This document shows positions 47,403 through 50,001 of a DNA stretch of 64,000 nucleotides, one piece after another; the stretch's first letter is position 1; every line of letters begins with the position of its first letter. Position numbers and translations under genes: made by a program. The stretch lies in the sequence record PV037725.1, one strand, 5' to 3'. The notes below the pieces were generated by a model. That model was not told the DNA's origin. It saw only the letters and a list, made by a program, of their open reading frames with translations, and did not search any database.

Positions 47403-47435
47403 GCATAAAGCCCCTCCGAAAGGAGGGGCAATATG
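47403..47435. terminator. bidirectional hairpin terminator (repeat family, minus orientation)
   Basis: GCATAAAGCCCCTCC-GAAA-GGAGGGGCAATATG between convergent genes. Confidence 0.8.
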
Positions 47436-47454
47436 TTGTATTTCTTTTTTTGTT

Positions 47455-47838
47455 TCAGCCACCAAGACCACGTAACAATTGACCAGCTTGGATACCTTCT
47501 TGAATCGACCGAGACTCACACAGTTCAGTAATGAACCTAGCATCATCAAATGGTAATTCAAAGAAGTCCAATAGTCCCATCCCAGTGACCACACCAATAC
47601 GACAGTTAATAAACTTCCGTATCCATGTGCGTCTTGGGCCACCCTCGATGATATCCTCTTTAGGATGCATCCTGACTAGATCTAGAGGATCGTCAGTCTG
47701 GTGTGTACAGATACCACGGTCTCGATGGTAAGCCTTGCGGGTAACCATCTGAGTAACGACTGAACGCATTGGCCCGGTTTCCATATAGATCCGTTCCAAC
47801 TCAGAGTTCTCAATCTCACGTAAACCAAACGTGGCCAT
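47455..47838 (-). CDS. 127 aa ORF; probably the C-terminal part of a -1 frameshift product (tail-chaperone T-like)
   Basis: No SD before the ATG; frame open upstream to the slippery site at 47940-47946; GLLDFFELP motif. Confidence 0.7.
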   Translation of the reverse strand: MATFGLREIENSELERIYMETGPMRSVVTQMVTRKAYHRDRGICTHQTDDPLDLVRMHPKEDIIEGGPRRTWIRKFINCRIGVVTGMGLLDFFELPFDDARFITELCESRSIQEGIQAGQLLRGLGG

Positions 47839-47912
47839 CGTTACATGGCCATCATTATCATGAAGATCTATCTTCAGTCGACTTGCTTTAGGATCACTAA
47901 CTTCGGAATCTA

Positions 47913-49535
47913 CTAAGCAGCTCTCTGGCCCGCTAACGTAAAAAAAGTTGCGAGCATGTCCAGTGGTACGAGGTGAGGTAACCGCTCATTATAAGTCAGA
48001 CCTTGCGGCGACTTACATTCAGGGCAGTTATGTGATGGTAGTGCACACAGACCAATGATAGTATCGTTGGAGTAAGCGTTAACACTATCAACAAAGCGGT
48101 CGAAGTATTCATGCTCGGAGATCGTCGAGGAGATGAAGTCCATGATGATTTCTTGGTCGTCAGTAAAGAACTGATCATCCAAGCTAGTAGCCTCATCATC
48201 TTTCAGATAAATCGCTTCTACCCAGTGAGAGTACTGAGTTGCTTTGGTGGCGTGTTGCAGACGACGGATGTACTCGTAGCGCTGGTTACCATCAGGCGAT
48301 TCGTTGAACGCACCTTTGGACATCTCGATCAGAGTATCGTACCAAAGCTTAGCTGAGATACGACGCTTGGCGATCGATGGTGGGGCGATCTTAATACCAA
48401 CACCTTGAGATTCGCCAGAATCGCTAGCGCTGTCAAACCACTTAACGGTTGCATTACCGATGGTGAAAGCTTCACGGTATGCTTTGAACTCTTCTTCGGT
48501 AGCAGGTTTGAATTGCTTAGCAATGAAGCGACGTTGGTCTTGGGTGAATACTGCGTCATCAAAGAACACGACGTTAGACATGTTCATCTTGAACTCAGTA
48601 ACACCGTTACACTTGTCTGGGTCAGCGATGCATGGAACACTGTAGTTGAAGCCATCTGGATACATAACTGCGGCCAGTGCGTGATGCAACAGGCTTTCGT
48701 CAAAGATGCTCATCTCTTGTTCAAGGTCACTAGGGGTAGCGAACTGACGGTTCGATGCAACAATGCAGTTAACGGCCAGATCAGTAACAGCATCCAGCAT
48801 ACGGAAGTTAGCGTGGGAGAATGCCAGACCTTTAGTGTCGTTACCCAGCTTCACTCGCAGGGATTGCAACTCAGTTTGCATTGCTACGATCTCACCCAGC
48901 GAAGGGCGACGCAGTCGTACCCAGATACCCGAGTGTGGCAGGAAGGCTTCGTAGTTACCGCCCAGACCAGCTTTATAACTCAGGTAAGCCAGAGCGGCTT
49001 CCTTAGAGTTCTTCTTACTGCGGTCGTATGTCTGAGCAGGGCGACCAGGGCGTACTAGGCGTTCTTGACCAGGTACACTGATACCATCGCGCCAGTGAGA
49101 CTCGCCGCGCTCTGTAGCGCCTACTGGAGTCTCATCCAGTGACAAGTGACCCAAGCCAGCAAACAGATGCGCCAGCCAGATGTCGTCGTGCTCGTTGGTA
49201 ACCAGATCACCCGAATGCATTGCTTCGAGTAAGGCGCCGTTACGTTCCAGAACTTTGTTAACGTTCCGATAAGATTCCTGAATGATGGACATGATAGCCC
49301 GAGTATCTTTCAGGGGTGCACCAGAAGCTTTACGCTCCTGGCTAAAGTGTACAAACTTTTGTTCAGGTTTGAACAGGTCCTTTTCAGGAACCTCCAGTGA
49401 TGGTGGGAGATCATCACTACGTTGTTCCACTGGTACAGCAGCTGGAGCATTCTCGTGGTCCACTACTTCTTTGAGTGCGGCCAGATGGAAATCATTGGTG
49501 TAGTTATCTTCGCGATCGAAGGTATCTTCAGACAT
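47913..49535 (-). CDS. conserved core protein (phiKZ gp77-like); T4 gp26 / tail assembly chaperone-like
   Basis: About 540 aa; VRLRRPSLGE motif; CIADPDKC and CPEC Cys pairs; start at MSEDTF after SD GAGGA. Confidence 0.65.
   Translation of the reverse strand: MSEDTFDREDNYTNDFHLAALKEVVDHENAPAAVPVEQRSDDLPPSLEVPEKDLFKPEQKFVHFSQERKASGAPLKDTRAIMSIIQESYRNVNKVLERNGALLEAMHSGDLVTNEHDDIWLAHLFAGLGHLSLDETPVGATERGESHWRDGISVPGQERLVRPGRPAQTYDRSKKNSKEAALAYLSYKAGLGGNYEAFLPHSGIWVRLRRPSLGEIVAMQTELQSLRVKLGNDTKGLAFSHANFRMLDAVTDLAVNCIVASNRQFATPSDLEQEMSIFDESLLHHALAAVMYPDGFNYSVPCIADPDKCNGVTEFKMNMSNVVFFDDAVFTQDQRRFIAKQFKPATEEEFKAYREAFTIGNATVKWFDSASDSGESQGVGIKIAPPSIAKRRISAKLWYDTLIEMSKGAFNESPDGNQRYEYIRRLQHATKATQYSHWVEAIYLKDDEATSLDDQFFTDDQEIIMDFISSTISEHEYFDRFVDSVNAYSNDTIIGLCALPSHNCPECKSPQGLTYNERLPHLVPLDMLATFFTLAGQRAA
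47916..47946 (-). other. candidate programmed -1 ribosomal frameshift site
   Basis: Minus strand ACT TTT TTT ACG (T-TTT-TTT), 5-nt spacer, hairpin AGCGG-GCCAGAGAG-CTGCT; the -1 frame runs into the 47838 ORF. Confidence 0.7.
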
Positions 49536-50001
49536 CTTTTTCTTCCTCAATGGACAATTCGGTGATACCCACAGCTTCTAGTTCAGCTACGATGTTCAAC
49601 ATCAGTGGGTGGATAGCTTGTTCCAAATGACCCTGAACTTTTGTATAGCCCAGAGTCAGGCCGTTCACCAATGGCAGCTCTTCTTCAGTTGGTGCACCTG
49701 TCTTACCTTCATGTTTCTCATACAGGGCTACCAATGCAGCAGCTACGTTGGCTACGTCTTTGCGGAGAGTATTGTATTTTGCTTCAAACCCTTCTGGGTC
49801 TGTGAGGAGAGCTTTGTATTCTTCCAGTTTAACACTGATCGGATAAACTACCAGTGAGGTTGAGTTGATACCTTGAGCCAGAGCACGACCAAGTTCGGCG
49901 ACGATGCTCCAACCAGCTTGTTTCAAAAGTTCTTCTGCGGCCTGTGCAGATTGATCGGCTACGTCTTCGGTGATCAGGTCGAGGGCGTTGATAGGTTCCA
50001 T
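49528..50001 (-). CDS. hypothetical helical protein
   Basis: 157 aa ORF, SD AAGGA. Confidence 0.8.
   Translation of the reverse strand: MEPINALDLITEDVADQSAQAAEELLKQAGWSIVAELGRALAQGINSTSLVVYPISVKLEEYKALLTDPEGFEAKYNTLRKDVANVAAALVALYEKHEGKTGAPTEEELPLVNGLTLGYTKVQGHLEQAIHPLMLNIVAELEAVGITELSIEEEKDV

Follow-up and report, generated by a model that had tools for sequence, protein, structure and literature searches.

A candidate -1 frameshift site that joins a core gene of nucleus-forming jumbo phages to the open reading frame downstream, and a similar site in T4-like baseplate hub assembly genes

We analyzed a 64 kb stretch of sequence record PV037725.1 (64,000 nucleotides, called the window here), which belongs to Pseudomonas phage Viktualia, a relative of the nucleus-forming Chimalliviridae phage 201phi2-1. 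Two successive minus-strand open reading frames (ORFs) of 540 and 127 amino acids (aa) are very probably the two parts of a single recoded gene, in which a slippery run of T residues near the end of the first ORF would give some ribosomes access to the second one. The best explanation of the whole, to which we assign a probability of about 0.6, combines this recoding with a role of the products in assembly of the baseplate hub or tail. The 540-aa ORF is CDS0333 of Viktualia and corresponds to gp136 of 201phi2-1, gp77 of phiKZ and core gene cg18 of the Chimalliviridae; in the 201phi2-1 record gp136 is annotated as similar to phiKZ gp77 and EL gp47. The supplement to the published core genome gives cg18 (Goslar gp081, phiKZ gp077) as a hypothetical protein (PMC10299810).

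A preliminary description of this DNA, made from the letters alone, had proposed one locus with two products made by a -1 slip, and everything it states about the sequence of the junction is correct. The 0 frame reads ACT TTT TTT ACG around an in-phase heptamer of the X_XXY_YYZ type, which lies eight codons before the stop of the 540-aa ORF as had been stated (Table 1). TAA TGA shuts the -1 frame about 40 nucleotides (nt) upstream of the site, and no ATG, GTG or TTG was found in that frame between these stops and the slip site. Past the site, 34 open codons with no start run in frame into the 127-aa ORF, and no Shine-Dalgarno-like purine run is present in the 16 nt preceding the annotated ATG at 47838. 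Expected product sizes of ~540 and ~693 aa were also calculated correctly. The preliminary description erred in calling the phiKZ counterpart of the downstream ORF gp76; it is PHIKZ076.4. An in-phase heptamer and a conserved, coding -1 ORF that lacks its own initiation site, as looked for in programmed -1 frameshifting, are thus both present at this locus.

We propose that most ribosomes would stay in the 0 frame and stop eight codons past Phe531-Phe532, yielding the short form. A fraction would slip back by one base with two tRNA-Phe on T_TTT_TTT and go on to translate 161 codons of the -1 frame, yielding a long form of ~693 aa with a predicted helical C-terminal domain. Runs of seven T or seven A residues are depleted in the window (3 found versus 10.5 +/- 3.8 expected), and the heptamer appears to be the only such run inside a long ORF, the other two lying between ORFs.

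Table 1. Features of the candidate recoded locus and its surroundings; positions are those of the window (bp, base pairs)
Feature	Position	Strand	Description
Upstream ORF (0 frame)	47913..49535	-	540 aa plus TAG; predicted short product; PHROG 4585, E 6.5e-167
Slippery heptamer T_TTT_TTT	47940..47946	-	Phe531-Phe532 in the 0 frame; eight sense codons, then TAG
-1 frame, slip site to TGA	47455..47946	-	Two Phe codons plus 161 codons; predicted C-terminal extension
Linker, 0-frame stop to first -1 start codon	47839..47912	-	Coding only in the -1 frame; no ATG, GTG or TTG
Downstream ORF as annotated	47455..47838	-	127 aa; CDS0332, 201phi2-1 gp135, PHIKZ076.4
TAA TGA shutting the -1 frame	47986..47991	-	13 codons 5' of the slip site
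Hairpin of the preliminary description	47916..47934	-	5 bp, 9-nt loop; unsupported
Hairpin, 7 bp	47832..47851	-	Annotated start (ATG) of the 127-aa ORF lies in the 3' arm
GC-rich hairpin, 8 bp	47410..47429		Between convergent genes, just past the end of the -1 frame
Upstream neighbor	49528..50001	-	157 aa; phiKZ gp78 homolog; PHROG 14050 (function unknown); 8-nt overlap with the start of the 540-aa ORF

Homologs of the upstream gene were matched by tblastn in 216 records of a phage collection. For a survey of the family we combined the window with 13 GenBank loci of relatives, ranging from phiKZ to Goslar, SPN3US, PCH45 and RSL2, and with 38 IMG/VR loci, which together gave 43 distinct junctions. 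Each of the 43 contains exactly one in-phase Phe-Phe site of the form N_TTT_TTY, with 8-44 codons left to the stop. All of them then have 151-179 open codons in the -1 frame, which often opens just 0-4 codons ahead of the site. Isolates and metagenomes whose proteins are 20-100% identical share this break and its register. No start codon in the -1 frame precedes the site in 39 of the 43 junctions. Beyond the site, the position of the first start ranges from codon 8 to codon 135; in phiKZ it is codon 85 of 165.

Codon choice at the site is equally regular. The first Phe codon is TTT in 43/43 junctions, while elsewhere in these genes TTT makes up 33% of the 958 Phe codons counted; this invariance would correspond to a log10 P of -23 if the lineages were independent, which they are not, although protein identities reach down to ~20%. 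The second Phe codon is TTT in 26 junctions and TTC in 17, and the base before the two codons is T in 28, G in 12 and A in three. A fixed third base in the first Phe codon together with a free last base is what re-pairing of the A-site tRNA-Phe one base back predicts.

No in-frame fusion of the two parts was detected among 47 homologs, all of 504-569 aa, in a search that accepted lengths of 297-945 aa. A second check of the best 150 of 1700 cluster representatives also gave no fusion, all of these proteins ending at most ~25 residues (most of them ~10) from the end of the profile match. One contig is an exception in that it stops short of the slip site. Three related loci are irregular: in Xanthomonas phage RTH11 the register is one base off and the annotated 627-aa ORF continues in the third frame, Pseudomonas phage RVTF4 has one additional frameshift in the downstream part, and one IMG/VR contig shows several frame changes and stops. 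These irregularities could be sequencing errors or decay.

The stretch between the 0-frame stop and the annotated ATG also bears on the -1 frame. The window region is 79% identical in DNA to 201phi2-1, and the T run and the next 26 nt are the same in both phages. Most of the differences from the stop to the ATG are synonymous when read in the -1 frame, and the sole indel is 3 nt long. We compared five close pairs over 24 linker codons lying wholly 3' of the 0-frame stop and counted 19, 16 and 56 substitutions at codon positions 1, 2 and 3, with a ratio of synonymous to non-synonymous codon changes of 43:20. The rest of the ORF has the same pattern (133, 68 and 310 substitutions; 229:140). In addition, the profile of the downstream family, PHROG 12109, begins 13 positions before the annotated ATG, and the starts chosen by gene callers for downstream homologs are spread over ~70 alignment columns. 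The profile start, the scattered called starts and the linker substitutions together show, as far as sequence comparison goes, that the -1 frame is protein-coding ahead of the annotated ATG even though it offers no start codon in that stretch. The 127-aa ORF as annotated is very probably an artefact of picking the first ATG. With the conserved slip site and register and this start-less coding linker, the comparison strongly supports the earlier proposal of one locus and two products.

Sequence searches offered few clues to what the protein does. Searches of Pfam, NCBIfam and PDB with both pieces and with the family profile gave nothing usable, and PHROGs returned families of unknown function plus one member matching a "baseplate hub" PHROG at E 0.019. 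Structures of the 540-aa ORF and of the -1 piece were predicted separately, each on its own. The AlphaFold model of the 540-aa protein has a predicted local distance difference test (pLDDT) score of 82.7 and a predicted template modeling (pTM) score of 0.80; the -1 piece is modeled as helical with moderate confidence (pLDDT 69.6). When the upstream model was compared with BFVD using Foldseek, chimallivirus homologs came first, followed by smaller T4-like proteins. Five or more T4-like models matched at E 1.2e-4 to 8.7e-4, with a probability of 1.00 and target-normalized template modeling (TM) scores of 0.46-0.55. They are labeled "baseplate hub assembly protein, bacteriophage T4-like", "baseplate hub subunit" or "baseplate protein", labels that belong to Pfam family PF12322. 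The fold of this family is thus found in the jumbo-phage protein in a comparison of predicted with predicted models, no solved structure existing. At ranks 13-19 there are graded intermediates of 250-670 aa from other large myoviruses, and this series of sizes, from T4-like proteins of 250 aa to jumbo-phage proteins of 540-690 aa, hints that the modeled folds belong to one superfamily.

Profile alignments between the chimallivirus family and PF12322 are colinear, and deeper profiles put the C-terminal Phe-Phe of one on the Phe-Phe of the other. A weak alignment likewise matches the last part of the -1 domain in jumbo phages to the conserved core of the T4-like -1 peptide described below. The preliminary description had pointed to tail assembly chaperones of the lambda G and GT type. 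The structure comparison does not bear out that family: the HK97 chaperone 2ob9_B was matched in PDB at E 2.8 with a probability of 0.06, which is noise level, and chaperone-labeled BFVD matches to the upstream model had E values of 0.2-1.7. What the comparison did return was a fold like that of T4-type gp26 and gp51. Table 2 of PMC3004832 lists T4 gp26 and gp51 as chaperones of hub assembly, with gp51 missing from the particle.

The alignment of PF12322 ends with an invariant Phe-Phe at its very end, and we found the same kind of slip site there. We built a T4-like family from a bona fide PF12322 member (E 3e-55) of phage DLP6 (PMC5349666) and surveyed 80 PF12322 loci of IMG/VR, 79 of them distinct. 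In 79/79 distinct loci T_TTT_TTY encodes the C-terminal Phe-Phe, and 0-3 codons (rarely 8) separate it from the stop. Past the site the -1 frame continues for 57-71 codons; the +1 frame typically closes after ~5. The first 12 codons of the -1 frame contain no ATG in 67 of the 79 loci and none of ATG, GTG and TTG in 45, and a start upstream of the site exists in only three. The conserved peptide encoded in this -1 frame is the separate "gp51 baseplate hub assembly catalyst" of cyanophage records. Its DLP6 copy matches 476 phage records, some of them at unannotated DNA. The same layout occurs in S-PM2, in the KVP40-like phage phi-pp2 and in Aeromonas phages 65.2 and Aeh1, and in the two Aeromonas phages the -1 ORF falls in an unannotated gap. 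Klebsiella phage 0507-KN2-1 (Ackermannviridae) has a 58-codon -1 ORF after its PF12322 gene, with a T_TTC tetramer only. The frameshift of the T4-like genes has apparently not been reported.

A different arrangement was seen in Escherichia phage UFV-AREG1, a member of the genus Tequatrovirus, which has two PF12322 genes with the short and the long form separate. The 208-aa product of gene 26 is the bare domain, with a Phe-Phe encoded by the non-slippery codons TTC TTT. Gene 51 encodes 250 aa, with the domain at 1-201 and an in-frame tail at 200-244 that matches a hidden Markov model (HMM) of the -1 peptides with 19 bits (E 5e-8 for two targets). The DLP6 "gp51" peptide did not reach T4-type phages by tblastn; the link was made with a KVP40-like gp26 query and the HMM of -1 peptides. 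Where the frameshift is absent, as in UFV-AREG1, the long form has its own gene, and this argues that the long form is a real and needed product.

From the fold similarity and the shared architecture we infer a hub-assembly function for the jumbo-phage protein, which would probably act in hub or tail assembly as an enlarged relative of the gp26/gp51 (PF12322) chaperones. By analogy with lambda G and GT, both forms, short and long, would cooperate in assembling the tail hub without becoming part of the virion. In the 201phi2-1 record gp135 and gp136 carry no virion or mass-spectrometry note; the neighboring gp138-140 have one. A preprint on the Goslar virion structure models 28 proteins and does not mention gp81 or gp82. 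Absence from the virion fits a chaperone.

Several observations weigh against this explanation. On the side of recoding, the heptamer is imperfect in 15/43 lineages, where a G or A in first position means that the P-site tRNA would re-pair with one mismatch, and the invariant Phe-Phe could partly reflect protein constraint. The long product is so far a predicted one. Stimulators were also sought around the window site. No Shine-Dalgarno-like element is evident upstream, the 60 nt downstream have a z score of +1.4, and the 77 nt from the site fold no better than dinucleotide shuffles (z = +1.21, 184/200 shuffles folding at least as well). The preliminary description had placed a hairpin in this region. 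Both of its 5-mers exist (47934-47930 and 47920-47916) and can pair with one G-U, but the stem is absent from the minimum-energy fold, and a stimulatory hairpin here is not supported. On the side of function, neither the window protein nor 32 relatives reached the curated cut-off of PF12322. Comparison of chimallivirus and PF12322 profiles by hhalign gave E 0.075 and 0.017 with probabilities < 3%, and plain HMM scores were ~6 bits. The similarity of the jumbo-phage -1 domain to the T4-like -1 peptide is suggestive only (E 0.057). The upstream model had no Foldseek match in PDB at E < 1, and the -1 piece had no match there at all. An N-terminal part of ~190 aa is absent from the T4-like proteins, and four Cys residues are invariant across 32 homologs (C302, C309, C504 and C507; C-x6-C ... 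C-x2-C). The Cys set suggests a zinc site and, by its aligned position, looks like an addition to a PF12322-like core. Lastly, the neighbors of the locus are RNA polymerase and helicase genes and small unknown ORFs, and not tail genes.

One possibility is that recoding is real and that the protein is unrelated to tails, acting for example in the phage nucleus, in replication or in transcription. We consider this unlikely, while recognizing that much of the above is compatible with it: the locus lies among RNA polymerase, helicase and polymerase genes, cg18 appears in the core genome simply as a hypothetical protein, the PF12322 links are not significant at the sequence level, and the invariant Cys residues and N-terminal part have no equivalent in T4-like proteins. 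Gene context, however, is weak evidence because chimallivirus genomes are scrambled. Moreover, T4-like hub assembly proteins are matched at a probability of 1.00 through several independent BFVD models, and the two families have in common a rare architecture, a C-terminal Phe-Phe slip site followed by a -1 extension. These points argue for the hub-assembly role.

Another possibility is transcriptional slippage, in which stuttering of a phage or host RNA polymerase at the T run would leave some mRNAs one base longer, and their ordinary translation would yield the long form. Runs of 7-8 T residues are present in 28/43 jumbo-phage junctions and runs of 6-7 in all T4-like ones, chimalliviruses use their own unusual polymerases, which are among the annotated neighbors, and no RNA stimulator was found in the clade of the window. 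Nevertheless, 15/43 lineages hold just 5-6 T residues (G/A_TTT_TTY). Such runs are short for polymerase stuttering and still allow a workable A-site slip of tRNA-Phe. In the second Phe codon the wobble position takes either T or C, which fits the Z position of a ribosomal heptamer. Folding of the 43 junctions gave no excess of stable downstream structures over control windows (mean z -0.17 versus -0.44), and RNAalifold found no consensus for ten sequences of the TTTTTTC clade, although six of them share an obvious stem. In six chimallivirus-like IMG/VR contigs of one metagenomic clade, and in this clade only, a stem of 8-10 bp begins 7 nt past the site, the classic ribosomal spacing, and includes the 0-frame stop, with z down to -3.2; it looks like a classical stimulator of ribosomal frameshifting. 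Double coding can account for the strong conservation of nucleotides that follow the site. Stuttering by a polymerase is on balance improbable, and if the gene is recoded, the slip is probably ribosomal.

A simpler possibility would be two independent genes, in which the second one would be initiated separately, from the ATG at 47838 or from a non-canonical linker codon, or by reinitiation once ribosomes have terminated at the upstream stop. This is how the locus is annotated in every record that we opened. The 201phi2-1 annotators used a TTG that overlaps the stop as the start, and in a few T4-like phages an ATG is found 1-4 codons past the site. The TTG of 201phi2-1, however, is TTA in Viktualia, and the first canonical start wanders between codons 8 and 135; in phiKZ its use would remove half of the domain. 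Purifying selection acts on the linker as on the rest of the ORF. The ATG in the window has no Shine-Dalgarno sequence and lies inside the 7-bp stem, whose arms are kept in 201phi2-1 and which would further disfavor independent initiation there. Two independent genes would also leave the invariant -1 register and the choice of TTT unexplained, and we regard this arrangement as very improbable. A homopolymer sequencing error or a recent frameshift mutation that split one ORF, suggested by a break at a homopolymer and by the irregular records of RTH11, RVTF4 and the IMG/VR contig, has a negligible chance given the same-register break in 43 distinct junctions and in the best 150 of 1700 cluster representatives with no intact fused version seen, and sequencing error or a pseudogene was rejected on the distribution across isolates and metagenomes.

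The proposed recoding resembles that of lambda gpG and gpGT in several respects. The frameshift in tail assembly chaperone genes is conserved in long-tailed phages (Xu, Hendrix and Duda 2004, cited in PMC9024508). In lambda, and as predicted here from the sequence signature, a -1 slip at a heptamer close to the 3' end of the first ORF yields a short and a C-terminally extended form with a common N-terminus, and the second ORF lacks a start. In both the arrangement is kept while the sequences diverge, and the products are presumed to be non-virion proteins. Unlike lambda G and GT, the jumbo-phage protein has no Pfam or NCBIfam chaperone match and is four to five times larger (540/693 aa versus roughly 100-150/250-300), its slip site is a U run encoding Phe-Phe, and its locus is not situated between the tail-tube and tape-measure genes. 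The G/GT label of the preliminary description is therefore best kept for the mechanism, and probably for the role, and dropped for membership in the lambda-type family.

Similarity to gp26 and gp51 of T4 lies in the predicted fold found by Foldseek and in colinear profiles that end on Phe-Phe, and PF12322 genes outside the T4-type genus add the T_TTT_TTY site with a -1 extension. The jumbo-phage protein differs in remaining below the Pfam threshold, in its additional ~190 N-terminal residues and four-Cys site, and in a -1 domain of ~160 aa versus ~60; the T4-type genus differs in having the two forms as separate genes and no slip site.

Textbook bacterial -1 frameshifts, those of Escherichia coli dnaX (tau/gamma) and of IS3-family transposases, yield two products in a set ratio. 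They use A_AAA_AAG and lysine tRNA with a Shine-Dalgarno-like element upstream and a hairpin downstream. The tandem slippage of tRNAs on an X_XXY_YYZ heptamer would be the same in the jumbo phages, whereas no stimulators of this kind were detected at the window site. In dnaX, unlike here, the shifted product is the shorter one.

The surroundings of the locus were also inspected. An A/T run follows the 8-bp GC-rich hairpin between the ends of the convergent genes, and the two (47410-47451) are likely to form the terminator of a three-ORF unit that extends from 50001 to 47455. The first ORF of this unit, the 157-aa upstream neighbor, has a short same-strand counterpart at its position in 14/14 records, with homology to phiKZ gp78 stated for 201phi2-1 only, and it may belong to the same functional module as the recoded locus. 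Other neighbors are small unknown ORFs, a helicase and RNA polymerase subunits.

We opened 14 chimallivirus records, those of the 13 relatives and of Viktualia itself, and none has a joined coding sequence at this locus. We also found no publication on frameshifting in phiKZ, jumbo phages or Chimalliviridae, or in gp51 or baseplate hub genes. Literature matches to "gp77" came from the gene numbering of other phages, and the main text of a preprint on a transposon screen of PCH45 does not name the homolog. The view of the preliminary description that this recoding had not been annotated thus appears correct. Gene finders that are blind to recoding choose a wrong start for the second ORF or miss it altogether, as in the jumbo phages and in the gaps of 65.2 and Aeh1. 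Protein databases derived from such annotation lack the long form, and proteomics searches therefore cannot find it.

Recognition of this recoding would set right how one core gene is annotated in all nucleus-forming jumbo phages, and the hub-assembly reading provides the first functional hypothesis for the gene. We hold more tentatively, at slightly less than even odds, that the -1 slip at a C-terminal Phe-Phe is an ancient common feature of one superfamily of hub-assembly chaperones that spans T4-like phages, Kyanoviridae and a number of Straboviridae lineages included, as well as Chimalliviridae. If so, this superfamily would be the contractile-tail counterpart of lambda G/GT, and the rule of two forms from one gene by frameshifting would hold not only for siphophage-type chaperones but also for another protein family, in contractile-tailed phages. 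Core gene cg18 would gain a function, and the "gp51" ORF of hundreds of cyanophage genomes would be the tail of a trans-frame protein. A simple evolutionary reading is also offered for the long-puzzling pair of gp26 and gp51 in T4, which would descend from a single recoded ancestral gene whose short and long frameshift products were resolved secondarily into two genes.

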